Shown: positions 443-35,949 of the stretch, piece after piece
How positions within the stretch are numbered: position 1 is the stretch's first letter
How the letters are laid out: each line of letters opens with the position of its first letter
Assembly (NCBI RefSeq): GCF_000143415.4
Contig: NW_003314400.1
Span: forward strand, 124,001 to 188,000
Origin: Selaginella moellendorffii
Taxonomy: Eukaryota > Plantae > Lycopodiophyta
Length of the DNA stretch: 64,000 nucleotides
Direction: 5' to 3'
The notes under the pieces: model-generated
Databases searched by the model: none
Told to the model about the DNA's origin: nothing
What the model saw: the letters and a program-made list of their open reading frames with translations, nothing else
Program-made: the position numbers and the translations under genes

Positions 443-3400
443 TTGGCAAGTCAGAGGAACAAATCCTCTAGTTGAAGTTACTAACTTTAAAAGGGGTGGC
501 TTATAGGGCCAAGCATGGAAGAGTCTATGCATGATCACAGATTTGTCAGGTGAAAGGACTTAGTAGTGCGGAGGAACTACATTCTTAAGCTGTGATTTAT
601 AGCGCGCTTTAAGTATAAATTAGTTTACTGGTGTAGGGAGTCACGCCAGGCATCCTGTGTAATGCCGTCCGTAGATGCATATACGGAGGTTGGGTTCAAG
701 TCCTGACCCTCTAGTGCTTAGGTTCGAGTCTCAACTCACTAGGGCGTAATGATGATTTGGAATATGAGGACACTCATTTTTCAGTGGTCATAGACTCTTA
801 GTAAGGAGACTGGCTTGGGCACACCGCCAAGCGGGGGATGCCCCGGAGTCGTGATGCATGGTTAAATTGCTAAGTGTGAAAACTTAACATATCTAACTTA
901 AACACTTTGGTGCAATTGATACCAAGGACGTGGTGAATGAGATGGGGACACCCAATCTTAGTTGTTATGGACCCTTGGCTAGAAGGGTTAGCTTGGGCAT
1001 ACCACCAAATGTGGGGGATGCCCCCGGGGTCATGGTCAACAACTTAAAGGTGTAAGCAATTCGAGAGATGATCCGTTGGGGTTCAAATACAGAAGGAAAG
1101 GGCCTATAAACAAGAGTGCACCCTCTTTTCCAATCGGTTAAGGGTCTTGGGATATTTGGGATTAAGCGTCCTTGGGTTTGAATAGTACTGGGCTGGGTGA
1201 CCTCTTGGGAAGTCCAAATTCAGGAGTTTACATTTGGTATCAGAGGGGTCTCAGGTTTGACTCTGTTGGTTGGCTAGGGGAATCATACCATATGTTAATT
1301 GACATCTGGTAGGTCCAGTTTGCTCCCACTGGGCTTGACGACTCGAGGGGTAGGGTCTCAAGAGAGTGGGGCTCTCGGGAGAGCTGCGGCTCCTAGCTTC
1401 CGTTCATAAGGGCATGAACTTACAAGGAAGCGTGGTGAATTGTAAGCAACCAAAGGGAACAACTCGAGAGATGATCCGTTGGGGTTCAAATATAAAGGGA
1501 AAGGGCCCATAAACAAGAGTGCACCCCTTTTTCCAATCGGTTAAGGGTCTTGGGATATTTGGGGTTAAGTGTCCTTGGGTTAATGTTAATGGTGTGGCTT
1601 GGTTAAGGGTTGGGTGACCTAATGTTAATGTTAATGGTGTGGCTTGGTTAAGGTGACCAAGTGGGAAGAACATTTAAGGGCAATGTGATGGCATAGTGAG
1701 TCCAAAGAAAGTAGTCTTTATAAGAGACCCATAGGAGGGTTACAAAGTTGGGCTATGGATGGGGTCTATAGCAGAAAATGCTAAAAAGACCTACTAGGGG
1801 TGAGCACCTTTTGGATTTGGCAAAGTGGAGTTTTTGCCATGGAACCAAAAGAATACCTCAAGGATGAAGGTAGTGATCTTATGTTACTTAGAACAACAAT
1901 TAATGGATAGGAGCAAAAAACTAGTGGCTAAGAAAAGAGCCATGGGAATCATGGGATAAAACCCAAGTGGCAAAGTTAAGCCAAGAACACTAATATGGTA
2001 AATGCTAACAGATTGTGGGAAGGCAATGTGTTTCCAAGGATGGATTCCCAATTGTTCCAATTTGGCGAAGGTGGAAGCTCCAAGGGAGGGAGCAATAAGG
2101 TAACCAAATGATAGGGCCGTGAACAACCCTAACACAAATTATGATAACTGGAATTTAGTGCCAAAGGTGGCACAAAGTAGAAAAAAGGATGATAGTGCCA
2201 TCAAGTAGAGAACTTCCTAGGATAGGGAAGTGGAGTTGCACAAAATGTGCAATGCAAGGTGTCGGAAACACTTAGGAAATTAACTCCGAGAAGTCAAAAT
2301 TAAAAGTTCCAAAGTGCAAAGGTTATATCAATGGAAACTGAGACTACTCGAGAATGATAGTGGGATTGAGATAGAAAAGGTGTCTCTAACAAGTTTAGTG
2401 AAAACTAAACTAATAAAAGAAAAGAACCACCACAAGTGATCAAATGAGTCTCTAAGTTGAAGAGACTATGCTCCTTACTTTTGGCATCAAACCGTTGACA
2501 AATATTGACTAAGTGCTAAGGATGGAGAAGGTAATACATGCTAGTATTACTTTATGAAATAGTTTGTCATTCAATAAGGACATCGAACTTTGTATGGGTG
2601 GTGGAGTTGTGAGACACAAAATCCCTAGGCCCCAAAGGGGAGCCAAAACGGTGCCACGTGGTAGTGGCGGAGGCAAAAGCTAAATGAGCGTAACACATTT
2701 GGACTAAAAGCTCTGACTCGAAAAGTTGAGAGTGGGAGTGGAACTCCCAACGAAACGAGCACGAAGAAAGCATTAAGTGAGTCTCTAAAAAAGGGACATA
2801 AGAGGACTAGCATATGACACATGGAAGTGTTCGAGATGGAGTCCGAGATGGAATCAAGACCGAGATTGAGACCAAGACAGAGTCTGAGTCCGAAACCGAG
2901 ACCGAGTCTGAGTCCAAGTCCAAGTCTAAGTCCAAATACTAATACAAACTGTTGGGTGAAAGCCCAAAGAGATCGTCCCCCAAGGGGGGGGGGGGTAAGG
3001 GGGGGGGGGTAAGGGGGGGGGGGCAAGTGGCTATAGGGGCTTCCAAAAGTATAGTAGGGAGAGTATAAGGGTTGGAACCTAGTGGAGTCAATTTGGCCAA
3101 GAAAGGCTAGTTTGGCCCAGGAAAACTATACCCAGGTGTTGGGTGATGAGTTGACCACTGGGAAGTCCAAGATTAGAGTGAATACAGACCAACAAGCGGG
3201 GTAGCTTGGTGAAGTGTTCAAGAGCCGGCTCTAGTTCCCCTAGGAGATCGAATGGTTAATGCTCCCAGTTCAAGGGTAGGTGGCACTACCTGCTTGGATA
3301 CCTGGCATGGCTCAATGGAACCTCGCTCTAAGCCCATGGCTAGAGCACCCAAAGGCAAAAGGTGGGGAGAGTACCCACGAGGCTCACGAAGGGCCACGGT

Positions 3401-3772
3401 GTTCCGAAATGTTGTCCTAGAATCTCGAATGGTGGAAAGGAAGAAGAGCAATCCTCTGGTGTAGTGACCAAGGATGCGGTCATATGACAAGGAGGTCTTG
3501 GAGAACAAAGGGACCTAATGGTCAAGCTTGTAAGCCTTGATCTAGTGGCAGTGTTAGCGAACACAACCATGGACAGAAAGGGACTTGGTGGGGACCGAAA
3601 AAGGGATATTGAGGAAGGCTATTCCCCATGCCTGTAGGCATCTTAAGGATGCTAAGGGGTGGATCTAAGATGATCACTCATGGACGGATGGCCCAATTTT
3701 TTAGAGACAGGACTATGATATAGGTGGTGTGGTTAAATGACTAATGTAGAATGGAAAAATTAGTCAGTGACA
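443..3772 (+). mobile_element. Older, 5'-truncated copy of the non-autonomous LTR element (internal region 443-2607, 3' LTR 2608-3772)
   Basis: 443-1050 aligns to ~9781-10388 and ~1590-2607 aligns to ~10530-11592. PPT ATGGGTGGTGGAGT is followed by TGTGAGACAC at 2608. The LTR ends ...TTAGTCAGTGACA at 3772 and is shorter and diverged relative to the 1.7-kb LTRs. Confidence 0.85.
1051..1581 (+). mobile_element. Cassandra-type TRIM, 3'-truncated, nested in the older LTR element
   Basis: LTR1 1051-1232 (TGTAAGC...TTTACA) contains the 5S-like TTAAGCGTCCTTGGGTTTGAATAGTACTGGGCTGGGTGACCTCTTGGGAAGTCC. PBS TGGTATCAGAG at 1235-1245. Internal region ~210 bp. LTR2 starts at 1441 (TGTAAGCAACC) and breaks off near 1581. 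Confidence 0.88.
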
Positions 3773-5155
3773 GCCAAGTATGCTATCACGGGAGAGGGCA
3801 GCAATGAGTGCAGCAGCCACGCTAGGTATGCTATCGCAGGAGAAGGTAGTAGCAGCAGCAACATCGGCAGCAATAGCTGCAACAGCTGCCGGAGCAGTAG
3901 CAGCAGTAGTAGCAGTAGCCTTCATTAGAGGTCACAGGTTCGATGCTTTCATGAGAAGGAATTACCAAAACTACGCAACCCTAAGATTAACAGCCGCCCT
4001 CTTTCTTTATTGTTTAGGGTTTTTTAGTTGTCTTGGTTGTTATGACTTATTCCAAAGAATACAAAAGGCATTATCAATTGAGTAGATGCGGTAAGGAGCA
4101 TAGAGTTAAGAGATTCAAGACTCGCATACTATGAGCACTTCCTTGCGCTGCTCATGCTGCTTGCGTTCTTCTAAGAGCTATTGGTGTTGCTTTCGGTAGA
4201 CCTATTTTGGAGTGGAGCAAAGTGCCTAAAAATCCCTTTCCTCTGCCTCCCCTATCTGAGAGTGAGCAAAATCTAATTAAGAGAGTTTTAAACTACATAA
4301 AGAACTTTTAAACTACTTAAAGAACGATCGAAATTTTTCTAAGTGTAGATGAAGTTGTTTTCGAGGGTATTGGGACAATGAAAATAGTGTCCCTTTTCAA
4401 AGTGGAGAGACAGTGATATACCCATTAGAGAGGATTGATGGGGAAAGATTTGAAAAATTACTTCAAGAGTTGAAATCTGGAGATCTGTTTGCTTCGGGAT
4501 TTCCTACCCATGATGGTGAGCCTCTCATCTATCGAATGTTGCTGGAACATGGCCGCCACCTAATCTTTGTCCAAATAAGAACATTGCAACTATATAGCTT
4601 CATTTTGGTTTCTGACACATATGTTTCCGTATGTGGTGATCAATTGACCAGATTGATAAATAAACTCCTCAATGAATAGTGTGGGAATAATGATTTTCAA
4701 AAGTTAGAATACTATTTAGGAAATGGTGGCAGGAAAGTAGATATTCTTTAGTGAGTGCAAGCGAGGCAGCAGTAGCAACCAGCGCAGCAGCATCAACAAT
4801 AGCAGCCGCACAGTTGGCAAAGTAGTAGCAGTAGCAGCAGTAGTAGTAGCCGGCACAGCAGCCACGCCAGGTATGCTATTGTGGGAGAGGGCACCAGCAG
4901 CCACAGTAAATGGCAGAGCAGGAGCTGCAACAACCAAGGAAGCAGCCGATGCAGCAGCCATGCCAGGTATGCTGTCGCAGGAGAGGGCAACAACAATAGT
5001 AGCATCAGCAGTAGCTGCCGCAGCAGGAGCAGCAGTAGCAACAACCCTCGTTAGAGGTTGTGGGTTCGATGCTTGCATGAGAAAGAATTACCGAAACCAC
5101 ACATCCCTAAGATCAACAGCCACCATTCAAGTGCATTGGACTAGGGGTAAGTAAT

Positions 5156-5378
5156 GAAGAGCACTCCACAAACAAGAGACGGGTCAAGGAGTTGGAGGCT
5201 ACGGCCACAATTCGTGAGAAAGAGGTAGAAACGTGAAGAGCTCATTCACTCACTTTCGTGACTCGGGAAAATCTTGCAGGTATTTATGCTGAACACGAAG
5301 CTAGCTCAAGCCGAGAGTATGACTTACGACATTGTGAGGGATTTACTAGAAGTCAAGCACAACATTGCAAGCTTCGCA
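5156..5378 (+). pseudogene. Captured two-exon fragment of a kinesin-12 (POK-like) C-terminal coiled-coil region
   Basis: Exon EEHSTNKRRVKELEATATIREKE, GT..AG intron 5225-5279, exon VFMLNTKLAQAESMTYDIVRDLLEVKHNIASFA, then GT. Resembles the remembered POK1/2 tail motif EIFMLNARLAAAESMTHDVIRDLLGVK. Confidence 0.65.
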
Positions 5379-5784
5379 GTAAGGATTTTTTCTTTATTGT
5401 TTAGGGTTTTTTAGTGTTTTAGGTTGTTATGGCTTATTCCAAAGAATACAGAAGGCGCTATTGATTAAGCAAATGTGGTAAGGAACATAGAGTTAAAAAA
5501 TTCAAGACTCGCATACTGTAGGCACTTGCTCGCGTTGCTCGCACTCTTTTAAGAGCTATTGGTGCTACTTTCCTTAGACCTATTTTGGAGTGGAGCGAAG
5601 TGCCTAAAAATCCCTTTCCTCTACCTCCCTTCCTTGAGAGCGAGCGGAATATAATTGAGAGAATTTTAAAGTACATAAAAAACTTTTAAACTACTTAAAG
5701 AATGGTCAAAAATTTTCTAAATGTAGATGAAGTTGTTTTTAGTTGTATTAGGAGAATGAAAATAGTGTCCCTTTTCAAAGTAGA

Positions 5785-7481
5785 TGTGAGACACAAAATC
5801 CCTAGGCCCCAAAGTGGAGCCGGAAGGGCGCCACATGGTAGTGGCCGAAGCGAGAGCCAAACGAGCGTAACACGTTTGGACCAAAAGCTCCGACTTGAAA
5901 AGTCAAGAGCGGGAGTGGAACTCCCAATGAAGTGCTTGAGGAACGAGCACGAAGCGAGCAAAAGGCGAGGCTCCAAAAAGGGACCCAAAAGGACCAACAC
6001 ATGACATGTGGGAGTGTCCGAGATGGACCCGAGTTGGAGTCCGAAGTGGAGTCCGAGATGGACCCGAGATGGAGTCCGAAGTGGAGTCCGAGGTGGACCC
6101 GAGATGGACCCGAGTTGGAGTCCGAAGTGGAGTCCGAGATGGACCCGAGATGGAGTCCGAGATGGAGTCCGAGATGGAGTCCGAGGTGGACCCAAGATGG
6201 ACCCGAAATGGAGTCCGAGATGGAGTCCGAGATGGACCCGAGATGGAGTCCAAGATGGAGTCCGAGATGGACCCGAGATGGACCCGAGATGGAGTCCGAG
6301 ATGGAGTCCGAGATGGAGTCCGAGATGGAGTCCGAAGTCGAGACCGAGACCGGGACCGAGACCGAGACCGAGACCGAGATCGGGACCGAGACCGAGGCCG
6401 AGGCCGAGGCCGAGACCGAGCCCGAGCCCGAGTCCGAGTCCGAATCCGAGTCCGAGTCCGAGTCCGAGTCCGAGTCCGGAGCCTGAGAGGGTGAAAGCCC
6501 AAAGCGTTCGTCTCCCAGACCCTGGGGGGTTTGGTGAGCTCCAAAAGTATAGTAGGGGGAGGACTGCAGTGGAGCCAGTTTGGCCAGGAAAGGCCAGTTT
6601 GGCCCAGGAAGGCCGGACCCAGTGTTGGGTGATGAGCTGCCCACTGGGAAGTCCAAGACTAGAGTGAACACAGACCGACAAGCGGGGTAGCTTGGTGAAG
6701 TGTTCAAGAGCCGGCTCTAGTTCCCCCGGGAGATCGACTGGCCGATGCTCCCAGTCCAAGTGTGGGTGGCACTACCTACTTGGATACCTAGTGTGGCTCA
6801 ATGGAACCCGCTCTAAGCCCATGGCTAGAGCACCCAAGGGCAGAAGGCGAGGAGAGTACCCAGGTGGCTCGCGTAAGGCCACGGTGTTCCGAAATGTTGT
6901 CCCAAAGGCCCAGACTGTGGAAAGGAAGAGGAGCAGTCCTCTGGGGTAGTGACCAAGGACACAGTCGTGTGGTGAGGAAGTCCCAGAGGACCGTGGGACT
7001 TAGTGGTCGGGCCTGTGGGTCTCGATCCAGTGGCAGTGTTGGCCAACATGGCCAGGGGCAGAAAGGGACTTAGTGGGGACTGACAGAGGGATATTAGGGA
7101 AGGCTATTCCCCTTGTCGGTGGGCATCCTAAGGATGCTAAGGAGTGGATCTGAGATGACCACTCACGGAAGGTTTGCCTAGTCTTGGAGAGCCAAGACGG
7201 TGATGCAAGTGGTATTGGACTACCAGTGTGGCAAAGGTGATTGGGCATGGCCTTAGCGTAACGGGCTGCTATGTCGGTGGTACCTTTGAGTGTCGGTCAT
7301 GGGATCGGACACGTGGAGCACTTGGACCAAGTGCAAATGTTGAGTGGCATGGATGCCATTCTCGGGGCTAGCAAGTCCCAAGTCCTGGATTGGACTTATG
7401 GAGGTTGTGAATGAGACTCCTCCAAGTGGTCAGAGGTGTGGTTAAGTGACTAAAGTAGAATGGAAAATTTAGTCGCTTACA
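5785..7481 (+). repeat. 5' LTR (1697 bp) with internal 11/12-bp and 6-bp tandem repeat array (~6015-6480)
   Basis: Direct repeat of 11593-13307. Array units GAGATGGAGTCC / GAGATGGACCC, then (GAGACC)n, (GAGGCC)n, (GAGCCC)n, (GAGTCC)n. Confidence 0.95.
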
Positions 7482-7484
7482 ATT

Positions 7485-7496
7485 TGGTATCGGAGC
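7485..7496 (+). promoter_or_regulatory. Primer-binding site for tRNA-iMet
   Basis: TGGTATCGGAGC lies 3 nt after the LTR end; one mismatch (G:U-compatible) to the canonical TGGTATCAGAGC. Confidence 0.9.
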
Positions 7497-9602
7497 TGTT
7501 CCTTAGTCCGACTTTTATTGGTGCTCAAGTATATCACCACTGGTGTTGGCATCGGAAGGTCCGAGGAGTGGGCCTATCCTTGAGGAGTAGCAAGTCGGGA
7601 AGACATGGCTCTCCATTATAGTTCATGTGTGAACTTGTAGACAAGGTGGTGGATAGAAAAGGGCCAATAATGGAACGACTTTGGGATCTTGGGAACAGTA
7701 TATGGTTTTCCTCAAAGAGTTGAGGATGTGATCCAGATGAGCGTTTGACTTAGCAAACTGGCTAATGTAGTTGTGGTAAACAACTACAGTTGGGATCATG
7801 GGAAAGATAAAGACTCCAAACCAATAAAGGAGTCACAAGATTTTCCTCATATAGTTGAGGTTGGTGCTCATGAATGTGAGACCAGAAGTAATGACCGTGG
7901 GTTGTAAAATACGGAAGAGGACTTGAGTCCTTGAAAAGGTAGCCGGGGCTACCTCTAATAAATGTTGGAACAACCCAAGGAGTTGGGGGTGTATTAAGTG
8001 GATGAGTTGGTGTTCTCATCACATGGACAATTAGTCCTAAGGGGCAAAGGTTGCCCCCAGAGAACAAAATCAAGTGTCGGAGTAACACTTGTGAAAATAG
8101 TCCTTTTGAGTAGGACAGGAATGCAAGAAGTGTATGCCAGTGAGCTAGTGCCTCACAAGTAAGCCCTTACGGGTCTGTGGATTAACCAAGTCCAAAATTG
8201 CTGGATGACTCAAGTAGAGTCAACGGATGGTCCTAAAAGGACTGATGGAAGCATTTGGACTAAGGTGTGGTATACCCCACAAAGGATGGGGGGGGATCAT
8301 AGGATCCAAGGATGAGAACAGAGGGTATCTCATCGATGGCAAAATGTGCCATGCTAAAGTTATGGGAAAGGTGTTCCCAGAAGAAAACAACTTTGACATA
8401 AAGTTGTGTGTGACTTCTATGGTGCAGTGCTAACAGATGGTTGGCATGAGAAAGAGCGGTGTTGGTCTTGGCAAAGACTTAGACACGAAGGGGAAATGTC
8501 ATAGAGGTAGGCTCGTGGAGCCAATGGTGTGGAGACACCAAATGTGCCAAGGTGTGATACCTTGAGGCTATGTTGGTGGGTTCATGAGAACCCCTTGCCA
8601 AAGGAATCCCAATGGAAATGGGAATAGCATAGCCTAAGTTGCAGAGCATGCAGTTGGAGTGTGGTGACCCAGATAATGATGGAGGTGTGAAAGCACCAAG
8701 CAATGAGTTGTAGGACTTGACAACTATGAGGCAACTAAGCAAGAGGTGCAAAATAACTGGTTAAACGGGTAGAAGGTAGCTACCCAAGACTTCTTAATAG
8801 TATAGGGAAGTTGGATATACCCTTACGGGGGATAAGTTGCTTGTGTTGCGATATAGTAAGTCAATGTCATAAAAGGAAATACTCATTGTCAAGAAAGCCA
8901 TCATTGGGACACCCGAACACTCTAGAACACCAAAAGGTGGTGTTTGATGTCGCGAGGGCAATGGATAAAGCCCAAGGGACTAAGTCCCTAGCGAATGATG
9001 GATAGAAGGTGCTATCCAAATGTCCAAGGTTGCGGAGACAGGAGAGGACTGTCTACCCGAGTTGGACAAAGCCAAAAATGGAATTTTGGCAAGGCTAGTG
9101 ATGGGCATGTAAAGGCCCATAAGCAACAATGTAATCCCAGTGTGTGGGATTATAAGGTGAGCATACCCGGATTGAGGAACCACTCCCTCGGCTATTGAGT
9201 AGGTTCATCCCTAAGAATACTTGCTAAAGCATGATAGAAAGTGCAAAGCTATCCTCCTGGTCTGGAGGAGAATGACCAAAGGAAAGGTGTGAAGCCAAAA
9301 AGCAAGAAGTAAGGGGATAGAACCGAACCGTAGGAATCAAAGGGCATAACCAAGGTTGGTTATGCCAGCTGGGAGTGGAGAATCAAGTGGGGGCTCGAGG
9401 GTGTTGCCGCTAGCAACCGTGATGCCATGGAGAGTCTAAAATATGGAATTGTTCATGTTAGACTATGTGGCATTTGGAAGGCTTGCAAAAAGGGAGGCCT
9501 TAGCAAGCTGAGGGACAGAGTTCCTTCAAGGTTCCCAAAGACGATTCTGGGTAGCTTAGTACCTAGAAAGGCCAAGTGTAAATGGTTCATGGAACGCGCG
9601 AA

Positions 9603-9629
9603 ATCAGAGTGGCGCAGCAGAAGCGTGGT
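9603..9629 (+). other. Sense-orientation 5' fragment of tRNA-iMet inside the element
   Basis: ATCAGAGTGGCGCAGCAGAAGCGTGGT versus the plant tRNA-iMet 5' end ATCAGAGTGGCGCAGCGGAAGCGTGGT recalled from memory (26/27 identical). Confidence 0.8.
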
Positions 9630-11592
9630 CTTGAAGCTTGCCATGAAGCAAGGCTATCAAGGTTAGGGAAGTAGTTCCCGAGTGTTCAAAGAGAGGGCTT
9701 TGAACGAAAGTCGATGGTCAAGGACTTTCACGCTTATGCAGGAACCATGTTACAATGGTCGGAGGACTTGCCAAGCGAGATTGGCACGTCGGGGGAACAA
9801 ATACCCTAGTTGAAGATGATAACTTCAAAAAGGGTGGGCCATGGGGCCGAGCATGGAGGAGTCCATGCATGATCACAGACATGTCAAGTGAGAGGACTTG
9901 GCAGTGTGGAGGAACTAGGTTCCTAAACTGTGATCTGTAGCGCGCTTTAAAAATGAGTTGGTGCACCGGCGTGGGGAGTCACGCCAGGCATCTTGTGTGA
10001 TGCCGTCCGTAGATGCATATACGGAGGTTGGGTTCGAGTCCCGACCCTCTAGTGCTTGGGTTCGAGTCCCAAATCACTAGGGCGTGGTGATGGTTTGGAA
10101 TATGAGGACACTCATATTTCGGTGGTCATGGACTCTCAGTGGGGAGACTGGTTTGGGCACACCGCCAAGCGAGGGATGCCTCGGAGTCGTGATGCACGGT
10201 TAGATTGCTTAGTGTGAAATCTCAGCATATCTAACTTGAACGCTTTGGTGTAAGTGGCACCAAGGTCGTGGTGAGTGAGATGGGGACACCTAATCTCAGT
10301 TGCTATGAACCCTTGGCCGTAAGGGCTGGCTTGGGTGCACCGCCAAGTGTGGGGGATGCCCCCGGGGTTATAGTCAACAACTTGGAGGTCTAGAAGACCA
10401 AGTACCTCTTGGCAACTCTGTTAAGGTGCCAAGGTGAGATCACTAGGTGATCTTATGGCCAGATAAGGACAAGGTCCTTGGTTGGCTAAGGAATGAAGTT
10501 CCTGGTTCAAAATGTTGAAATTGAACTGTTTAAGGTGGTGTGGCTTGGTCGTGATGACCAAGTGGGAAGAGCACCTAAGGGAAATAAACTATGTCCGTGC
10601 GATGGCATAGTGAGTCCGAGGAAAGTAGTCTCTATAAAAGACCCATGGGAGGGTCACAAAGTTGGGCCGTGGATAGAGCCCATAGCAGAAGATGCTAAAG
10701 AGACGTACTAGGGGTGAACATCCTCCGGACTTGGCAAAGAAGAGTCTTTGCTATGGAACCGAAACAATACCTCAAGGAAGGAGGTAGAGATTCGATGTTG
10801 CTTGGTGCAACAATCAACGGATAGGAGCAAAAGATGAGTGGCCAAGATAGGGCCGTGGAATCCCTTGGAAGGAATCCAAGTGACAAAGTTAGGCGAGGAA
10901 CACTAATGTGTTGGACGCTAACAAGTTGCGGGAAAGGAAGTGTGTTTCCAAGGAGGGATTCCGAAATGCTCCAATTTGGCGAAAGTGGAAGCTCCAAGGG
11001 AGGGAGCGGTAAGGTAGCCAAATGATAGGGCCATGAACAGCCCTAGCACAAAGTATGATAAATGGAACTTAGTGCCCAAGGTGGCACGAAATAGAAGAGA
11101 GGATGATGGTGCCCTCGAGTAGAGAACTTCCTAGGATGGGAAGTGGAGTTGCACAAAAGGTGCAAGGCAAGGTGTCGGAGACACCTAGGAAATTGACTCC
11201 AAGAAGTCAAAATTCAAAGTTCCAAAGTGCAAAGGTTATATTGGTGGAAATTGAGACTACTCGAGAAGGAGTAGTGGGATTGACTTAGAGAAGGGTCTTT
11301 AAGAGGTTTAGCGAGAACTAAACCAATAAAAGGAGAGAACCACTATATGTGGTCCAATCAGTCTCTAAGATGGAGAGACTACCCTCCTTAGAGGATATGC
11401 AAAAGGCATGGTGAGCCTTCAATGTCCAACCATTGACGAATATGGAGAAGGCATGGTGAGCCTTCAATGTCACACCATTGACAAATATTGGCTACGCGCC
11501 AAGGATGGAAATGGTAACACATGCGGGTGTTACTTCATAAAATGGTTCACCGTTCGATGAGGACATCGAACTTCGTCTATGGGTGGTGGAGT

Positions 11593-13307
11593 TGTGAGAC
11601 ACAAAATCCCTAGGCCCCAAAGTGGAGCCGGAAGGGCGCCACATGGTAGTGGCCGAAGCGAGAGCCAAACGAGCGTAACACGTTTGGACCAAAAGCTCCG
11701 ACTTGAAAAGTCAAGAGCAGGAGTGGAACTCCCAATGAAGTGCTTAAGGAACGAGCACGAAGCGAGCAAAAGGCGAGGCTCCAAAAAGGGACCCAAAAGG
11801 ACCAACACATGACACGTGGGAGTGTCCGAGATGGACCCGAGTTGGAGTCCGAAGTGGAGTCCGAGATGGACCCGAGATGGAGTCCGAGATGGAGTCCGAA
11901 GTGGAGTCCGAGATGGACCCGAGATGGACCCGAGTTGGAGTCCGAAGTGGAGTCCGAGATGGACCCGAGATGGAGTCCGAGATGGAGTCCGAGATGGAGT
12001 CCGAGGTGGACCCAAGATGGACCCGAAATGGAGTCCGAGATGGAGTCCGAGATGGACCCGAGATGGAGTCCAAGATGGAGTCCGAGATGGACCCGAGATG
12101 GACCCGAGATGGAGTCCGAGATGGAGTCCGAAGTCGAGACCGAGACCGGGACCGAGACCGAGACCGAGACCGAGATCGGGACCGAGACCGAGGCCGAGGC
12201 TGAGGCCGAGACCGAGCCCGAGCCCGAGTCCGAGTCCGAATCCGAGTCCGAGTCCGAGTCCGAGTCCGAATCCGAGTCCGAGTCCGAGTCCGAGTCCGAG
12301 TCCGGAGCCTGAGAGGGTGAAAGCCCAAAGCATTCGTCTCCCAGACCCTGGGGGGTTTGGTGAGCTCCAAAAGTATAGTAGGGGGAGGACTGCAGTGGAG
12401 CCAGTTTGGCCAGGAAAGGCCAGTTTGGCCCAGGAAGGCCGGACCCAGTGTTGGGTGATGAGCTGCCCACTGGGAAGTCCAAGACTAGAGTGAACACAGA
12501 CCGACAAGCGGGGTAGCTTGGTGAAGTGTTCAAGAGCCGGCTCTAGTTCCCCCGGGAGATCGACTGGCCGATGCTCCCAGTCCAAGTGTGGGTGGCACTA
12601 CCTACTTGGATACCTGGTGTGGCTCAATGGAACCCGCTCTAAGCCCATGGCTAGAGCACCCAAGGGCAGAAGGCGAGGAGAGTACCCAGGTGGCTCGCGT
12701 AAGGCCACGGTGTTCCGAAATGTTGTCCCAAAGGCCCAGACTGTGGAAAGGAAGAGGAGCAGTCCTCTGGGGTAGTGACCAAGGACACAGTCGTGTGGTG
12801 AGGAAGTCCCAGAGGACCGTGGGACTTAGTGGTCGGGCCTGTGGGTCTCGATCCAGTGGCAGTGTTGGCCAACATGGCCAGGGGCAGAAAGGGACTTAGT
12901 GGGGACTGACAGAGGGATATTAGGGAAGGCTATTCCCCTTGTCGGTGGGCATCCTAAGGATGCTAAGGAGTGGATCTGAGATGACCACTCACGGAAGGTT
13001 TGCCTAGTCTTGGAGAGCTAAGACGGTGATGCAAGTGGTATTGGACTACCAGTGTGGCAAAGGTGATTGGGCATGGCCTTAGCGTAACGGGCTGCTATGT
13101 CGGTGGTACCTTTGAGTGTCGGTCATGGGATCGGACACGTGGAGCACTTGGACCAAGTGCAAATGTTGAGTGGCATGGATGCCATTCTCGGGGCTAGCAA
13201 GTCCCAAGTCCTGGATTGGACTTATGGAGGTTGTGAATGAGACTCCTCCAAGTGGTCAGAGGTGTGGTTAAGTGACTAAAGTAGAATGGAAAATTTAGTC
13301 GCTTACA
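11593..13307 (+). repeat. 3' LTR (1715 bp)
   Basis: Direct repeat of 5785-7481. It is 18 bp longer, entirely within the tandem array (offset 5808 before the array, 5826 after). Confidence 0.95.
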
Positions 13308-15874
13308 GTAGAGAGACAGTGATATACCCATTAGAGAGGATTGATGGGGAGAGATTTAAAAAGTTATTTCAAGAGTTGAAATCTGGAGATCTGTTTGCTT
13401 GAAGATTTCTTGCCTACAACAATGAGTCTCTCATCCATCGAATGTTGCTAGAACATGGCCGCCACCTAATCTTTGTCCAAACAAGAACATTGCAACTATA
13501 CAACTTCATTCTGGTTTCTGACAAATATGCTTCTGTATATGGTGATCAATTGACCAGATTGAAAAATGGACTCCCTGATGAATAGTGTGGGAACAACGAT
13601 TTTCAAAAGTTAGAACACTATTTAGGAAATGGTGGCAGGAAAGTTGAAACTCTTTAACAAGTGCAAGTAGAGCAGCAGCAACAGCCAGCACAGCAATGGC
13701 AATAGCAGCATCGGCAGCAGTAGCCACACAGCTGGCAGAGCAAGAGCAGTAGTAGTTAGCATAGCAACCACGCTACGTATGCTATCACAGGAGAGGGTAG
13801 TAGTAGTCGCAACAACTAGTGGAGCAAGAGGAGCAACAGCTGACGCAGCAGCCACACCAGGTATGCTATCGTAGGAGAGGGCAACAGTAGCATCAGCATC
13901 AGCAGCAGCTGCCAAAGTAGGAGCAATAGCAACCCTCGCTAGAGGTTGCAAGTTCGATGCTTACATGAGAAAGAATTACTGAAACCATACAACCCTAAGG
14001 TCAACAGCTGCCCTCTTTCTTTATTGTTTAGGGTTTTTCAATGTTCTTGGTTGTTAGGGCTTATTCTAAAGAATACAGAAGGTGCTGTCGATTGAGCAAA
14101 CGCAGTAAAGAACATAGAGTTAAGAGATTCATAACTCGCATACTGCGAGCACTTGCTCATGCTCTTCTAAGAGCTATTGGTGCTTCTTTTGGTAGACCTA
14201 TTTTGGAGTGGAGTGAAATGCCTAAAAATCCCTTTCCTCTGCCTCCCCTCCCTGAGAACGAGCGAAATCTAATCAAAAGAGTTTTAAACTATTTAAAAGA
14301 CTTTTAAAGTATTTAAAAAATGATTGAAATTTTTTTGAGTGTAGATGAAGTTCTTATCGAGGGTATTGGGATAATGAAAATAATGTCCCTTTTCAAAGTG
14401 GAGAGACAGTGATATACCTATCAGAGAGGATTGATGGAGAAAGATTTAAAAAGTTACTTCAAGAGTTGAAATCTGGAGATTTATTTACTTTGGGATTTCC
14501 TACCCACAATAGTGAGCCTCTCATCTATCGAATATTGCTGGAATATGGCCGCCACCTAATCTTTGTCTAAATAAGAACATTGCAACTATACAGCTTTATT
14601 TTGGTTTCTGACACATATGCTTCCATACATGGTGATCAATTGACTAAATTGATAAATAGACTCCTCAATGAACAGTGTGGGAATAACGATTTTAAAAAGT
14701 TAGAATACTATTTACGAAATGGTGGCAGGAAAGTAGATATTCTTTAGTGAGTGCAAGCGAGGCAGCAGCAGCCAGCACAACAGTGGCAGCAACAGCATCG
14801 GCAGGAGCAGTTGCACGGCTGGCAAAGCAGGAGCAACAACAGTAGTAGCAGCCGGCACGGCAGCCACGCTAGGTATGCTATTCCACAGCAAATGGCAAAG
14901 CAGTAGCAGCAGCAGCAGCAGCTGAGATAGCAGCCAGTGCAGTAGCCATACCAAATATGCTATTGCAGTATAAAGAAGTGCACAAGTGTGACTCCAATTA
15001 TCAACAACAAGCTGATGCTCTATGATTGTTTTTTCTTCGTTCATGAGTTCCAAGGCTGACATAGTTGCTACTAGTGTGCTGCCAGTTGATAAGATGACAG
15101 ATTACAAGGGTCTGATTCAGGTTATTGTGAATCAAATCCCACGGAGGCAGCTGGAAGAGACTTACGGCTTGCTCTGAAGCCAAAGCCATATTAGGATCAA
15201 AATAGGCCTCCTACTGCTGGTGAGCTTCTCAAGTCATACGCTCAGTCATGCGGCTATGTAGCTTTGAGAGGTCTTCCAGATGAGACACAATCTGCTCTCA
15301 AGGACTACCTCAATGGTAAGCTTTTAAACTACCATACTCCACCAGACGACAACACCATAAGTGACGATGAAAGCAACGACAATGATGAGAAGCTGGTGGT
15401 GTGACGTTGACGATCTCTCAGGACAAGAGGACGAAGAAGACGAAGGAGAAGAAGACGAAGAAGGATCAAAAACAGCTACAGCTACTGGTGAATCCAATCT
15501 CAAAGCTCGACTGGATGTCCAAAAGCTTTTAACGCACATGTAAGAGGTCTGGTACACGTGGCAAAATTACGCGATGCCACGTGGAGGTACTAAGCTTGTG
15601 CACGTGGCAAAATGCAATGCTGCCAAGTCGGAAGTACTTCTAGGCTAAGAAAGCCAAAACTTCTATTGATTGATCCGCATTGTAACCCGCTGGGCTTTTC
15701 TCTGATTCTCGCTTTTGATCCTGATGTCACCCTATTCTACAGCAACCACCACAAATGGATGAGTATAAATGTGTAAACATACCCTCGTCTTGTCGCAATA
15801 TCATTTGGAGTGGATTATTAAGGACTTATTAAGTGGATCTGTCTCTCCATAGCGTTCATACTGGAGCATATTCG

Positions 15875-19236: not shown

Positions 19237-19308
19237 GTGGCTGTAGTTTAGTGGTGAGAATTCCACGTTGTGGCCGTGGAGACCTGGGCTCGAATCCCAG
19301 CAGCCACA
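19237..19308 (+). tRNA. tRNA-His (GTG)
   Basis: GTGGCTG/CAGCCAC acceptor stem, anticodon arm CCACG-TTGTGGC-CGTGG, T-arm CTGGG-CTCGAAT-CCCAG, A73 discriminator, upstream CAA motif, TTTT at 19313-19316. Confidence 0.96.
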
Positions 19309-19321
19309 GTCGTTTTGACTA

Positions 19322-21511
19322 ATGTTGACTAGGAATCATTGGCTTCAGTTGATACAGTCATGCAGCTCGCTATCTGATGCCAGACAGATCTATTCAAGCC
19401 TACCACCAAAGTCTCTCACCTCTGATACTTACTTGGCAAACAAGCTCATAGAAATGTATGGAAGATGCGGCAGCCATTATCATGCTTGGATAGTCTTTGA
19501 TCAAATCCAGCCAAAAGATTCATTCAGCTGGGATTTGATGCTCACTGCTTACCTGCGAAATGGGAGCTTTGACGAGGCCAAGCGGTTCTTCAGCTCCATT
19601 CCTCACAAAACTGCTGTTGCAGGGACTGTGATGCTGAACGTATTTGCCGAAAACGGGGATCTCCCGCAGGCTAAAGAGATTTTTGATCGTATGCCCGAGA
19701 GAGATGTGGTTTCGTGTAGTGCTATGCTCGCCGCATACATAAAAAACGGTTTTCTTGAAGAGTGCGAGATAGTTTTTAACCAAATGCCGATCCTTGATAT
19801 TGCATGTTGGAACTTAATGGTTACAGCATATGCCCGAACAGGGCATGTTAACGAGGCTAAGCTGGTGTTTGCAAAGATGCCTGAGAAGAATCTCGTCTCT
19901 TGGACAGCCATGTTATCGGCTTTCTCTCAAGGTGGTTTTGTCACAGAGGCTTGGGAGACATTCCTCGCGATGCCAGCCACGGATTTGGGTGCCTGGAACG
20001 CCATTCTAAATGCGTTTGCGCAGCAGAAGGGAAACTTCTTTCTACAACAGGCTGAGATTTTGTTTGATGAGATTCCTGAGAGGAACCTGGTCTCGTGGAC
20101 TGCAATGTTTTCTGTCTACGTAACAAACGGGATGATTAGAAAAGCCAAGGAGATATTTGATGGAATGCCGCAACAAGATCTCATCTCCTGGACTTCAATG
20201 CTCACGGCTTATGCCCAACTTGGGCATGTTGAGAAGGCAAAAGAGATATTTGATAGAATGCCTCAATGGAGCGTTGTTGCTTGGACAGTCATGATTCATG
20301 CTTATGGCGAGTGCGACCTTGTCAACCAGGCAAAAGAGCTCTTTGACACAATGCCGGAAAACAACATTGTTTCGTGGAATGGAATCCTGTCTCTCTATGC
20401 CCGGAACGGATATATGAAAGAAAGCCTTGAAATTTTCCATGGAATGCCTGCTTGGGACGTGATTTCCTGGACAACCATGCTACTCATGCAATGGCAAAGT
20501 GGGCGTATCAAAGAGGCCGAAAAGTTGTTTGAAAGAATGCCCCAGCGAAACCTGGCAGCTTGGAACGCGATGATTTTTGGGTATGCCCAGGCTAGTCAAC
20601 TGGACGAAGCGAAGAAAGCTTTCAACGCGATGCCTCGTCGAGACATGGCCTCGTTCAACGCAATGCTAAGTGCCTACACCCACAACGATAAGAATACGAG
20701 AATGTTGGATTTAGCAAAGGTTCTGATTGATGAAATGCCACAACAAGACCTGGGCTGTAAAAATTCAATGCTTAGATTGCTTTCTCAGTTTGGCTATGTT
20801 GATGAAGCTCAAAATATGTTTAATTGTATGCCAGAAAGGGACATTGCTTCTTGGAATACAATTTTATCCGCATATGCACAAGAGTGGCACATTTCTAAAA
20901 TCAAACTTGTGTTTTATCGATTGATGCCTCAAAGAGACTCAGTATCCTGGAACACAATGCTCACTGCCACTGCAAGAAGCTGTGGACATGAGGCAGTTGC
21001 AAAAGAATTCCGTTTAATTCCAGAAAGAGATCTTATAAGTTGGAAGATTTTGCTGGCTGCTCATGTGCAAGAGCAAAACTTCTCTGGAGCTTTTAATACT
21101 GCTTACGATTTGAGTTTGACAGGCTTACCAGATTCAACATGTTTTGTGTCAATTTTATTCGCATGCAATCACAGTGGAAGTGTTGCTGCTGCCAAGTCAT
21201 GGTTTGGCTCTTTAGTCTGGGATTTTATGTTGAATCCGTCAAAGCAGCATTACTGTTGCATGGTTGACATTCTAGCCAGAGCTGGGCACTTGAGCGATGC
21301 AAAAGAACTAATTTGCAGCATGCCTTACGTTCCAGATGCTGCAGAGTGGACATGCCTGTTGCGAGCCTGTGTGAGCCAAAACAAGCTTGAGCTTGGAAGT
21401 GAGGCTGCAAGAATGTTGTTCGAGCTAGAACCAAGAAACAAAACCCTTTTTGTTACAGCTTCAAACTTGAATATGTTTTCTGCACAAACAAAAAATTTGC
21501 TGAAAATTTAA
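19322..21511 (+). CDS. PLS-class pentatricopeptide repeat protein with E domain (729 aa)
   Basis: Intronless ORF with many ~31-aa repeats (FDRMPERDVVSW..M..AYA..G) and HYCCMVDILARAGHL...MPYVPD E-region motif; no DYW. Confidence 0.93.
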   Translation: MLTRNHWLQLIQSCSSLSDARQIYSSLPPKSLTSDTYLANKLIEMYGRCGSHYHAWIVFDQIQPKDSFSWDLMLTAYLRNGSFDEAKRFFSSIPHKTAVAGTVMLNVFAENGDLPQAKEIFDRMPERDVVSCSAMLAAYIKNGFLEECEIVFNQMPILDIACWNLMVTAYARTGHVNEAKLVFAKMPEKNLVSWTAMLSAFSQGGFVTEAWETFLAMPATDLGAWNAILNAFAQQKGNFFLQQAEILFDEIPERNLVSWTAMFSVYVTNGMIRKAKEIFDGMPQQDLISWTSMLTAYAQLGHVEKAKEIFDRMPQWSVVAWTVMIHAYGECDLVNQAKELFDTMPENNIVSWNGILSLYARNGYMKESLEIFHGMPAWDVISWTTMLLMQWQSGRIKEAEKLFERMPQRNLAAWNAMIFGYAQASQLDEAKKAFNAMPRRDMASFNAMLSAYTHNDKNTRMLDLAKVLIDEMPQQDLGCKNSMLRLLSQFGYVDEAQNMFNCMPERDIASWNTILSAYAQEWHISKIKLVFYRLMPQRDSVSWNTMLTATARSCGHEAVAKEFRLIPERDLISWKILLAAHVQEQNFSGAFNTAYDLSLTGLPDSTCFVSILFACNHSGSVAAAKSWFGSLVWDFMLNPSKQHYCCMVDILARAGHLSDAKELICSMPYVPDAAEWTCLLRACVSQNKLELGSEAARMLFELEPRNKTLFVTASNLNMFSAQTKNLLKI

Positions 21512-21547
21512 ACTTTTATCAATTATTGTATAGATAAATTTCACTTT

Positions 21548-21835
21548 CTAATGTTTACAGAATGTAGATTTACACTCTTTCACGACTTGCATGAAAGAGG
21601 GTAGTTTGTATTGGCCCTTGTCACAAAAGCACGATGATGAAAGCGAGTTACTTTGGTATGATTGACAGCAACTAACAAGGCAAGCAGATCCTGGAGTGCT
21701 ACAAACCTTTATGCAATTGGACACTTTGTTTGCATGGCTGATGCAAGAAGGATTTTTCTCCGCTGGAACCATTCCTTGTGTTTGATCGGGAGCAAACACT
21801 AGCAAGCTTGCTAACACCAAGATCACAATCTTCAT
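21548..21835 (-). CDS. Small secreted cysteine-rich protein (95 aa, 10 Cys)
   Basis: Signal peptide MKIVILVLASLLVFAPDQTQG followed by 10 Cys including CC and CxC. A decayed paralog lies 4.6 kb away. Confidence 0.7.
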   Translation of the reverse strand: MKIVILVLASLLVFAPDQTQGMVPAEKNPSCISHANKVSNCIKVCSTPGSACLVSCCQSYQSNSLSSSCFCDKGQYKLPSFMQVVKECKSTFCKH

Positions 21836-23050
21836 CTCTAGCCTCTCTCTCAATTGAAACATTTTTGAGTTTCCAATATTTATCAATGAAATGGCTTTGG
21901 ATGCTCCGATCACATTTTGTTTTTTATTTATATCACATTGAGAATGCAGGCAATGACAAATTCACAAAGAACAGTTCTTATGTATGACTACAATTATAGG
22001 TAGTCATATTTCTACAATTACGATTTCTTATGTGCACGCGTGTTCCGTCATTTCCTGAAACACGAGTCTTGCTTAGTCTACGTTTCCACAAGACTATGTC
22101 TCGCTATGAAATTGAAGAAAAGTTTGCCCGTCTCAGGATGCCCCCTTTGGGTATCCACTGCAAACATGATATCCGAACATTATGAAATTCGAAGGCTGCC
22201 GAGCCTTTTCGATCGATCTGCACGCCCCATACGGACGATCGAATTGGACAGCAATCAGCTTTGTGAGTGAGGGGACCCAAGAATTGAATTTGCTTGACAT
22301 TTGCAGATCCCTCTCAGATAGGCGAGGTATGAAACCTCACCACACACTCCGCCCAAGATTCTCGTATCAGTACTACTTACTAGTGGCAAGGAAAACCACG
22401 TTTTTGACAATATCATCCATGGGTTACACTGTCTCCCTCTGGCAATTCAAAGCAGTGCAAACAAAAACCAAAGGTGGTGGTGCCCCCAGACATTGACACC
22501 CGAGCTACGCCAATGGCTGCGTTCTAGTTTTACTTGCCTGGAATGAGGAACACAGCGAATCTCAAAGACAAAATCCATTGAATTGTTGCGCAATGTTTGA
22601 GGCAACTACTTCTCAAAACCATGGAAATATTAAAACAACACAAACAAATATTTATCTAAACCATGGCCGATTAAAAGGTCACAAGCAGAACAATATGGCG
22701 CACATGGTCCTTAGTGGCGGGCGCGGGAGTTTTGGCCGTTAGCGAATTTGGGCACATGGCCACAAATGCGGATGGGCCGGTACCAGTGCTACGTGGCAGC
22801 AATAATAGACTTCGGTAGATAAGAGCCAGCGCAGTTTTGTGGTCTTGCAATTTTCCACGTGTGCATGCGACAAAGGAAATTGTCCTTGCAATTGGGAAGA
22901 CGCCATTAAAAGTTTTTAGGTATACAGAAAGGTGTGGTGTGGTCAAAAGAGAGTGCTTCTTTGCGGCTGCCATAGCCACGGAGCTCTTCCTTCTTCTTCC
23001 TCTCCATTCTTGCTTGTGGTGTGGATCCATTGATTCATCTTTGCGGAGAG

Positions 23051-24114
23051 ATGAGCGCTGGAGTGGGAATTCCTGGTCCCTGGAGCTTGGAATCGCAGCC
23101 CATTAGCTCCGGGTTCTTGGCGGTGCCTGGGAATCGCGGTGCCCGATTCGATGCGCGAGTCGAGAGATCGAGACATTACGACATTCCATCGAGCGACAGC
23201 GAGAGCGGTGACGATCTGGACGACATTGGCGATGATTTCCTGGACGAGTCCGGGGATTTCATCGACCATGGATCGGGCGCGGGGATCGAGAGCTGCGGGA
23301 GTAACATCTCATCGCCCATTGAGATTTGCCCCAAGACCGAGGGCGCGACGAGGATCCTCCGCCAGAAATCCCGGCGATGCGCGGCGGAGCAGTCGCGGGA
23401 GGAGGCCTGGGAGCGGCGCCGCTTGATCGAGGAGCTCAAGTCCTCGTCATCGGAGCACTCGAGCAAGCTCATCGCGCGCTCCAATTCCGACTGTGGTCCG
23501 CAGCAGCCATCGCTCCACAGCGATGAGGATCTGGGCGATTGCCCGCGATCGAGGAGCCTGACCGAGGAGGATTTCGAGGAGCTGCGCGGCTGCATTGATC
23601 TGGGCTTCCGATTCAATGCCGAGAAGGAAGACCCAATGCTGTGTAACACTCTCCCCGCGCTCGAGGTGTGCTACGCCGCCAATCGGCAGCTCCAGGATCT
23701 ACACTCGCCCTCTGGATCGAGCGATTCGTGTTCGTCTTGGCAGGTCGCTAGCCCAGGTACGAGAATTTCTTTCTTTCTTTCTAGTTCCTCCTTGGCAGCG
23801 TAATTTAGGGTTCTTCGTGAGCTAACCACAAGAACGATGGAGAAGAAGCTCTGTTTTCTCTTGTTTCTCTTTAGCTTTTCTTTGCAGAGCTCTAAAAGCC
23901 AGGCCTAGCAATCGCTCCTCTACTCTAGAGGTGTGGTATCACTAAATTTTCCCAGGCAGCATTGATTCGTACTAGGATCGTTGATCGATTGTCTCGAGAA
24001 AACACTCACAAATTCTGTCTTTTTGTTCTTGCAGGAGAGGAGCTCCAACAAGTGAAAGAGAAGCTCAAGCATTGGGCTCGTGCCGTGGCTTGCATTTCCA
24101 GGCAATCGTGCTAG
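23051..24114 (+). CDS. DUF1685 family protein (exons 23051-23756 and 24035-24114)
   Basis: SLTEEDFEELRGCIDLGF...LCNTLPALEVCYA...SWQVASPG spliced to EELQQVKEKLKHWARAVAC*; canonical GT/AG intron. Confidence 0.88.
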
Positions 24115-24224
24115 CTGCTAGCTACCGAGATTTTCATAACGACACAAAAATTTTGGTAGCTCTCTCCAAACAATGTGATATACTTCCACCAAGAACCCTA
24201 AAATCAATAACAAAACTGTATAGA

Positions 24225-24614
24225 ATGTTCTTCGCGCGATCGCTCGCAGCGCTCTTCAATCCAATCCACGCCAATGCCGCCGTCACGATCGCCGGATCGC
24301 GCGTCCTCACCGAGATCCTCCGCGAATTCCAGGTCCTGTCGAGCGAGGCGCTGTGGAAGCACGCCTCCGCGCGGGGGATCTCGAGCGTGGAGCGCATGGA
24401 GCTGGTGATCCAGTGGATGGCCGAGAGGGGCCAGATCCGCATTGTCCCGGCCAGTGATTTGGGGCTCCCGGGCGTGTCCAAGCTCCATATGCTTCCGGAC
24501 GCGCCGTTCTCGCGCTGGAAGAGCGAGGATTCTCCCGGCGATTGCGCGCAGAGGAGGCAGATCAGGAAGCAGAAGAAAAGGAGTGGCGTGCCCAGGATCT
24601 TCTGGGATGTGTAG
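24225..24614 (+). CDS. Putative plant mitoribosomal mL80-like protein (129 aa)
   Basis: Basic N-terminus. RVLTEILREFQVLSSEALWKH..GISSVERMELVIQWMAERGQI resembles the remembered family pattern TRxIxDILKEHGPLTVxETW..GLTSKxHMKIVLRWMRERQKL. Confidence 0.5.
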   Translation: MFFARSLAALFNPIHANAAVTIAGSRVLTEILREFQVLSSEALWKHASARGISSVERMELVIQWMAERGQIRIVPASDLGLPGVSKLHMLPDAPFSRWKSEDSPGDCAQRRQIRKQKKRSGVPRIFWDV

Positions 24615-24734
24615 AGCGCGCGATCTTAGATCCTTGGCGCCTACATTGGAGAGATTTTAGGGTTCTTGAGGATTTGGGGATTTTAGGGTTCTTGAGATTT
24701 AGGGTTCCTGGGAGAGGACGATCGATCAAGGAGA

Positions 24735-25148
24735 ATGCTGTTCCCATCGACTGCCCGGCGGATGCGGCATTTCCGTCCGCGGGTAGCGCTGGGCGACACG
24801 GAGACTTTCACGCGGCTGGTGACTGACATCCTGCGCGAGCACGAGATGGTGACGGTGGACGAGTGCTGGGGGCATTTGCAGGAGCGAGTAGAGCACGGGG
24901 AGCTCAAGAGCAAGCGCCACATGAGGCGGCTGCTGCAGTGGATGGGCGATATGCAGATTCTGCGCAGGGAGAGCGTTCGATCGGGCGGCCCACCCGTGCT
25001 GCTGCTATGGGATGCGCCGCCAATCCACAAGGAGCGGCAGCCGGATCCAGATCTGTCGCGAGAGCAGCGCGGTAGCCGGTCTCGCGAGTGGGTCTGGAAG
25101 CCCAGGAAGATCACGCTGTGGGGCGATAAGAAGCTGGATTGGATCTAG
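24735..25148 (+). CDS. Putative mL80-like protein, second tandem paralog (137 aa)
   Basis: Arg-rich presequence-like start; TRLVTDILREHEMVTVDECW...LKSKRHMRRLLQWM; upstream telo-box-like TAGGGTT motifs. Confidence 0.6.
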   Translation: MLFPSTARRMRHFRPRVALGDTETFTRLVTDILREHEMVTVDECWGHLQERVEHGELKSKRHMRRLLQWMGDMQILRRESVRSGGPPVLLLWDAPPIHKERQPDPDLSREQRGSRSREWVWKPRKITLWGDKKLDWI

Positions 25149-31638: not shown

Positions 31639-31760
31639 AAAGATAGTCAGTGGATTGAACATCGATCAATCGGAAAAAGCTTGTACCGGGATGACAACAA
31701 AAGCCTGTAAATGTGAGAAAGAAATAGACATCGATACGTGTGTCACGCTACCTAGCGTCG

Positions 31761-35828: not shown

Positions 35829-35949
35829 CGAGAATCTCTACCTCTTCTATAGCTCGCTAGTTTCAGAGCATTGAATGAAAGCTTGATACCCTGGAAAAAC
35901 TTTCCAAGGTTTACATGGCATTCTTGGAACGGCCGCCTTATAAACATAC

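Follow-up and report, generated by a model that had tools for sequence, protein, structure and literature searches.

A non-coding LTR retrotransposon of Selaginella moellendorffii with a body built as a chain of short hairpins

Large retrotransposon derivatives (LARDs) are long terminal repeat (LTR) elements with an internal domain of more than 4 kb that lacks coding capacity (PMC9033089), and a passage of PMC7215508 that cites Kalendar et al. 2004 says that they specify conserved RNA secondary structures. Hairpin-forming sequence is also found in the palindrome-rich region of the maize Sirevirus LTR, where it has been discussed together with small-RNA silencing (Bousios et al. 2016, PMC4728375). 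Here we analyze a 64,000-nucleotide stretch of the Selaginella moellendorffii genome (contig NW_003314400.1, positions 124,001 to 188,000; hereafter the window) and describe an element on its plus strand, at 5785-13307, whose interior carries about ten times as many short perfect hairpins as expected. The element is a complete, recently inserted, non-autonomous LTR retrotransposon of the LARD type. A preliminary description made from the letters alone had called it a non-coding element whose interior is a near-continuous chain of stem-loops selected for its fold. The hairpin excess is large and, within the window, specific to the element, and the question that we weigh below is what produced it.

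Hairpins were counted as perfect stems with loops of 3-9 nt in 7483-11592 and compared with 100 dinucleotide shuffles. The interior holds 101 stems of at least 5 bp against 20.8 +/- 4.6 in the shuffles, 55 of at least 6 bp against 5.2 +/- 2.2 (z 22), and 23 of at least 7 bp against 1.4. Five other stretches of the window contain only 1.1-1.6 times the expected number, so the proposed excess over both shuffled and flanking DNA is borne out, and a scan in 1-kb bins found 9-15 stems of at least 6 bp per kb over 7-12 kb and 0-4 per kb in most other bins. Folding energies gave a similar picture. The mean folding z of 100-nt windows was -2.0 on the plus strand and -2.2 on the minus strand in the interior and about 0 in the flanks, and the segment 7890-8189, folded separately, reached -3.24 (flank control -0.56). 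The local minimum free energy of the whole interior was -1366.8 kcal/mol versus -1078 +/- 27 kcal/mol in shuffles (27% lower, z about -10.7), with 123 hairpin loops in the predicted fold versus 87 +/- 6. Across the whole LTR the hairpin excess is lower than in the interior, at 2.6-4.3 times; the same pattern had been noticed in the 3' part of the LTR, where it is indeed present, but it occupies both non-repeat parts.

The element body carries about 100-120 short Watson-Crick hairpins which, outside a tandem-repeat block in the LTRs, mostly differ from one another in sequence. Their stems measure 5-10 bp with none beyond 10, their loops 3-8 nt with a peak at 4-7 nt, and they are almost always perfect. 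All seven hairpins that the preliminary description quoted were recovered where it had placed them, as was the outer stem GATCACAG...CTGTGATC at 9871-9935. Its picture of a near-continuous chain is fair, although its statement that most stretches form hairpins is a little liberal for strict perfect hairpins, which at a stem length of at least 5 bp occupy 40% of the interior. Stems with one internal mismatch number only 8, compared with 23 perfect stems of at least 7 bp, which argues that the hairpins are kept perfect in the active lineage.

The bases left unpaired are as distinctive as the stems. Hairpin loops are 70% purine and 9.7% C, and unpaired bases in the predicted fold are 44% A, 31% G, 18% U and 8% C (about 75% purine), a purine-rich and C-poor composition that looks like negative design. 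Predicted accessibility is correspondingly low: 10.8% of 8-nt windows are likely to be open versus 19.5 +/- 1.2% in shuffles, about half, and for 16-nt windows the median probability of being open falls five-fold relative to shuffles.

Pairing over longer distances is enriched in one size range. We found 17 stems of at least 7 bp spanning 41-80 nt against 6.4 +/- 2.0 in shuffles, and no excess of such stems spanning 21-40 nt. Words such as CCAAG/CTTGG recur across many stems (the strongest enriched word in the interior, CCAAGG, occurs 12 times versus 2.1 expected), and this re-use probably explains part of the medium-range excess. Clean nesting around inner hairpins was seen for only 5 of the 17 medium-range stems, no more than random placement would give (P 0.17). 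The multibranch nesting that had been proposed is real for the clean domain at 9871-9935, whose outer stem is preserved in an older family copy save one C to T, but nested domains are not supported as a general rule. Simple or tandem repetition is ruled out as the cause of the hairpins, as had been claimed, given that they differ in sequence, that the two halves of the interior show no detectable similarity, and that there is a single internal repeat. This is a 44-nt tandem duplication at 11403-11481, which doubles the hairpins GAAGGC...GCCTTC and TCAATG...CATTGA and is present as a single unit in the older copy.

The anatomy of the element, about 7.5 kb in total, is that of an intact insertion (Table 1). 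The first LTR ends at 7481, so the interior begins at 7482 as proposed, and near 4400 a copy of the flanking repeat contains an uninterrupted paralogous site, GTGGA. With tandem repeats excluded, the two LTRs differ by 6 substitutions in 1226 aligned bases (0.49%), a divergence so small that the insertion must be young. The LTR tandem block spans about 470 bp, has its counterpart at 11820-12305, and is of unequal length in the two LTRs; 200-nt bins over 5985-6584 contain 0 stems of at least 6 bp. The primer-binding site is one position off from what we take to be the plant initiator-Met primer site, TGGTATCAGAGC, and that position would form a G-U wobble. Initiator tRNA-Met primer sites are common in plant LTR elements. 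Primer site and purine-rich tract together identify the plus strand as the RNA strand, and say nothing further on where pairing acts.

In size (an interior of more than 4 kb, in the usage of PMC9033089) and in its absence of gag, pol and env, the element belongs with the LARDs. It is not a terminal-repeat retrotransposon in miniature (TRIM), a class with LTRs of about 100-250 bp and a very short interior, as its LTRs are 1.7 kb and its interior 4.1 kb long; nor is it a retrozyme, as no hammerhead or other ribozyme appeared when 5500-13600 was scanned with Rfam (E up to 1). One older copy is 82-85% identical, and very many contig pieces from a DNA sequencing run match the interior at >=85% over its whole length. 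No autonomous LTR element lies within the window.

Searches for genes in the element returned nothing. None of the 20 longest stop-free pieces of the interior, taken from both strands, matched Pfam at E up to 1, and the longest, of 134 amino acids, had no homologue in a large protein collection; an exact-protein look-up of two open reading frames (ORFs) of the element likewise found no match. Inside the interior, Rfam (E up to 1) identified no family and ARAGORN no tRNA, so that no known RNA family or tRNA gene is seen there. The sole Rfam rows were sub-threshold matches in the LTR repeats, including MIR2933, a repeat artefact.

Table 1. Coordinates of the element, its parts and a related copy within the window
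Feature	Start	End	Strand	Remarks
Older family copy, 5'-truncated	443	3772	+	module B 443-2607, LTR 2608-3772; 82-85% identity; contains a nested insertion
Target-site duplication GTAGA, 5' copy	5780	5784	+	identical 5 bases at 13308-13312
5' LTR, TGTGAG...CTTACA	5785	7481	+	1697 nt; aligns with 11593-13307
LTR tandem-repeat block	6010	6480	+	12-mers GAGATGGACCC/GAGATGGAGTCC, then GAGACC/GAGTCC hexamers; hairpin-poor
ORF-less interior, hairpin chain	7482	11592	+	4111 nt; hairpin counts and folding; no Pfam or Rfam match
Primer-binding site TGGTATCGGAGC	7485	7496	+	3 nt past the 5' LTR end; read from sequence
Module A	7497	9781	+	26 stems of at least 6 bp vs 3.1 +/- 1.8, z 12.7; own initiator-Met-type primer site
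Sense-strand copy of initiator tRNA-Met, roughly its first 27 nt, ATCAGAGTGGCGCAGCAGAAGCGTGGT	9603	9629	+	begins at the first base of the tRNA
Module B	9782	11573	+	28 stems of at least 6 bp vs 2.5 +/- 1.6, z 16.3; aligns with 443-2607 at 82-85%
TGG-initial stretch TGGCACGTCGGGGG	9782	9795	+	2 nt past the LTR in the short variant
Small multibranch domain	9871	9935	+	8-bp outer stem; encloses hairpins 9885-9900 and 9910-9924
Two T-arm-like hairpins, loop TTCGAGT	10026	10082	+	10026-10046; 10056-10072 within an 8-bp outer stem
Purine-rich tract GGGTGGTGGAG, polypurine-tract position	11581	11591	+	abuts the 3' LTR; identical in the older copy
3' LTR, TGTGAG...CTTACA	11593	13307	+	1715 nt; aligns with the 5' LTR
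Target-site duplication GTAGA, 3' copy	13308	13312	+	read from sequence

The interior is composed of two modules, A and B, between which BLAST detects no similarity. Both are nevertheless equally hairpin-rich, and among the arguments internal to the element we find none stronger for an architecture that was favored and not inherited from one odd ancestor. A short family variant without 7483-9781 also exists, with an interior that starts at 9782: a contig of run X15 fuses the LTR end (7482), with one extra letter between, to 9782, leaving module A out, and the older copy starts at the same point. Run X15, which holds these short-variant contigs, was guessed to be RNA and may contain DNA. The stretch TGGCACGTCGGGGG is probably the primer site of the short variant, different from that of the long form, judging by its position and its initial TGG; we identified no tRNA matching it. 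Within module A, in the middle of the element, lies a sense copy of part of a tRNA, likened here to plant initiator tRNA-Met on the basis of what we take that tRNA's sequence to be. In module B, the second of the TTCGAGT hairpins with its outer stem resembles an acceptor/T-arm minihelix, and 10026-10082 falls in the part of the interior where the two copies agree best (about 92% identity versus 83% overall).

The older copy allowed us to follow the hairpins after insertion. Its hairpin excess is down to about 3 times and many hairpins are gone. Among 248 stem pairs, 179 are unchanged, 25 have become G-U, 35 are broken by one change, 4 carry compensatory changes and 5 are doubly broken, and G to A together with C to T changes prevail in its substitution spectrum. 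The older copy has thus undergone neutral, strand-symmetric decay, from which it follows that inserted copies are not constrained; such decay is silent on the replicating lineage. In the LTR of this copy we also saw long G runs at 2985-3023 (GGGGGGGGGGGTAAGGGGGGGGGGTAAGGGGGGGGGG), where the young LTR has GGGGGG only, and a much shorter tandem block. The older copy also carries a nested insertion of about 570 bp (1057-1640). Its direct repeats, each of 122 bp and 93% alike, lie at 1057-1178 and 1460-1581 and contain a B-box-like GGGGTTCAAAT, and a canonical primer site, TGGTATCAGAGG, is found at 1235-1246. By these sequence features the insertion is probably a TRIM, possibly of the tRNA-like Helenus kind described in Selaginella moellendorffii (PMC10886601).

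Variant sites among family copies were examined as well. We placed 37 sites, among the 40 listed of 431 variant places, on the fold predicted from this copy. The listed interior variants break 2 pairs versus 5.2 expected (P 0.04) and the listed LTR variants 4 versus 6.55 (P 0.11), together 6 versus 11.7 expected by random placement. Transitions at Watson-Crick pairs among the listed variants give G-U in 7 cases and A-C in 3. On this modelled fold the listed variants show a weak lean toward a structure-preserving, sense-strand pattern.

The family is a major repeat of the Selaginella moellendorffii genome. In a DNA sequencing run, 152,152 of 2.8 million contig records (about 5%) matched a 5.3-kb query, consisting of part of the LTR and the interior, at >=85%, a count that serves as a rough measure and not as a copy number. 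In two RNA-seq samples labelled as the same species the family is essentially silent, with matches that are mostly less than 95% alike and cover the query only in part. Two metagenome scans for conserved 26-mer and 24-mer patterns yielded no further copies. In an air metagenome (run X5), 61% of sampled interior words were present, indicating that the air at the sampling site carried DNA from this plant or from one very closely related to it.

Both element copies of the window sit in copies of a flanking repeat (1-442, 3773-5784 and 13308-14700). This repeat combines microsatellite-like tracts rich in GCA with a conserved unit of some 400 bp that recurs at 76-442, 4002-4457, 5389-5784 and 14016-14453. 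The arrangement points to a favored insertion target or, alternatively, to an array that was duplicated locally. The repeats adjoin a gene-rich stretch (19237-38822) with tRNA-His at 19237-19308, three intronless pentatricopeptide repeat (PPR) genes at 19322-21511, 29848-31638 and 37404-38822, and a leucine-rich repeat (LRR) receptor kinase on the minus strand at 26284-29526; one neighboring PPR gene, looked up as an exact protein, had no match.

Several of these features suggest maintenance and not accident: the perfect stems, the sharp limit on their length, the C-poor unpaired bases, the dissimilar modules, the behavior of the listed variants, the loss of hairpins from the old copy and the drop in accessibility. 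Our preferred reading, to which we give about even chances, is that selection in the replicating lineage acts on the way in which its single-stranded genomic RNA folds. Several results weigh against it. The hairpin folding excess is equal on the two strands, and stems containing G-U are only slightly more enriched on the plus strand, such that no strand-specific, RNA-only signal was found; an equal excess on both strands means that sequence alone cannot place the pairing in RNA rather than DNA. Single-mismatch stems are too few for G-U to be compared with A-C. The comparison with one older copy gave no covariation above chance: the 4 compensatory changes in 248 pairs are about what chance gives, as about 3 are expected given the substitution rate and transition bias, and the single changes in that copy (25 to G-U, 24 to A-C) reveal no strand. 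Nor is the strand revealed by 7 G-U versus 3 A-C among the listed variants, a test that comprises 37 listed sites on a fold predicted from one copy. Accessibility is about halved, not abolished. Finally, among 9.2 million reads taken from each of two RNA-seq runs, 11 and 18 matched, and no transcript was seen. For the earlier claim that the element is selected for its fold, the balance is that listed variants break pairs about half as often as expected, but the strands are equal and covariation is not in excess.

The main rival holds that the hairpins are a functionless mutational by-product, in which short template switches by reverse transcriptase or DNA polymerases make and re-perfect inverted repeats in a non-coding body. 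Template switching is said, in work by Löytynoja and co-workers, to make and repair hairpins. It is in line with pairing that is purely Watson-Crick and equal on both strands, with stems that are perfect and not wobble-rich, and with covariation in the copy pair that does not rise above chance. It probably did occur in this lineage, to judge from the tRNA-iMet piece at 9603-9629: this would fit switching onto a co-packaged RNA during minus-strand synthesis, and its start at the first base of the tRNA fits a polymerase running off the end of a co-packaged tRNA. What such a process does not predict is the near-absence of C at unpaired positions and the purine-only loops and linkers. It also sits poorly with a ten-fold excess sustained over 4 kb, with some 100 hairpins that for the most part do not overlap and that vary little in size (stems of 5-10 bp, loops mostly of 4-7 nt), with the scarcity of imperfect hairpins, with other repeats in the window that show no excess, and with listed family variants that avoid breaking pairs. 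On balance we think it rather unlikely.

The same strand symmetry, with a minus-strand fold as good as the plus and RNA that is barely detectable, would be expected if the palindromes acted in DNA, either through folding of the minus-strand cDNA in the course of reverse transcription or as dense, short symmetric sites in duplex DNA for a dimeric protein, chromatin or methylation. The hairpins differ from one another, though, and so offer no common binding motif, the strongest enriched word being CCAAGG; the cDNA strand is short-lived relative to the genomic RNA; and at 5-8 bp the stems lack the length needed for extrusion from duplex DNA. We consider action in DNA improbable. Still less credible is an interior that is hairpin-rich simply for being a patchwork of captured structured cellular RNAs such as tRNAs. 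The 27-nt sense piece of initiator tRNA-Met at 9603-9629 and the two TTCGAGT T-arm-like hairpins at 10026-10072 point that way, and the genome does hold small LTR elements with tRNA-like sequence (Helenus-1_SMo, PMC10886601), but recognizable pieces amount to fewer than 100 of 4110 bases, and neither Rfam (E up to 1) nor ARAGORN recovered a family or tRNA from the interior. A decayed gag-pol with incidental hairpins can practically be dismissed: the Pfam and protein-collection searches were empty, and LTRs that are 99.5% identical outside the repeats leave too little time for a coding region of this copy to have decayed beyond recognition.

If the fold of the genomic RNA was indeed selected, its composition suggests how it could work. 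Unpaired bases that are nearly all purines would not pair with each other, blocking long-range and intermolecular pairing, and the RNA would therefore stay a string of insulated local hairpins. Such a string would contain no helix long enough for Dicer and would offer fewer stretches open to small-RNA-guided slicing. It would at the same time display about 100 G/A-rich loops of the kind bound by the nucleocapsid or Gag of retroelements; retroviral nucleocapsid proteins bind stem-loops with exposed purines, HIV-1 psi being an example. With loops for Gag and low exposure to Dicer and slicing, the RNA would compete well for the particles of a helper. More tentatively, and with doubt prevailing, hairpin-chain retroelements may represent a distinct strategy in which a multi-kilobase, protein-less RNA is itself the object of selection, soaking up helper Gag and resisting small-RNA silencing, and on which unrelated modules or families of this genome have converged.

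Were selection on the fold to hold, few non-coding RNAs known from eukaryotes would match this one in length and density of structure, and it would be a natural case of negative design, in which confining the unpaired positions to purines leaves room for local hairpins only. Two questions could then be tested in one very abundant family: how non-autonomous retroelements come to prevail in competing for the particles of a helper, and whether RNA structure shields a transposon transcript from small-RNA silencing. If instead the hairpins are a by-product of template switching, the family would be an unusually clear record of that process in reverse transcription. Under either reading this architecture seems to account for a considerable share of the genome, going by the proportion of matching contig records in one DNA run.

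Pervasive folding of a whole replicating RNA is a property that the element has in common with RNA viruses with genome-scale ordered RNA structure (GORS), viroids and retrozymes. The folding-energy excess seen here (27%) appears above the values of GORS viruses, and in viroids structure has been linked to resistance against small-RNA-guided cleavage. These are, however, RNA replicons or circular RNAs with ribozymes, of which Rfam finds none here, and the element forms a linear chain of very short local hairpins in place of long-range or rod-like structure. TRIM, Cassandra and Helenus elements (PMC10886601) are likewise non-autonomous LTR elements of the same host with small-RNA-like sequence, 5-bp target duplications and a primer site of the initiator-Met type. 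They differ in being a few hundred bases long with a small-RNA copy in the LTR that acts as a promoter, whereas the present element is 7.5 kb long and carries its short tRNA-like bits inside the body.

The nearest described feature is the palindrome-rich region of the maize Sirevirus (PMC4728375), also a part of a plant LTR retrotransposon rich in palindromes capable of forming hairpins. In maize, though, the elements are autonomous and the palindromes are limited to one hotspot, within the cis-regulatory part of their LTR, which has been proposed to yield hairpin-derived small RNAs and to aid silencing; the hairpins here are much shorter, too short for Dicer, and fill a 4-kb non-coding interior plus the LTR. 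In overall organization the closest relatives are the LARDs, for example Sukkula of Triticeae, with which the element shares, as far as the passages on LARDs in the cited papers go, two LTRs, a primer site, a purine tract, a large non-coding interior, abundance and a presumed dependence on a helper. By the same sources its LTRs are shorter (1.7 kb versus about 4.4 kb) and it belongs to another plant lineage, with no sequence relation shown. It stands apart from the LARDs in having a measured ten-fold excess of hairpins, short and perfect, that runs the length of the body and leaves only purines unpaired. A literature search whose coverage stopped short of Kalendar et al. 2004 itself turned up no account of a retroelement with short hairpins chained over several kilobases. 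An undescribed class, as the preliminary description had it, is therefore too strong a term; the element is of the LARD type, with an extreme and apparently undescribed sequence architecture.

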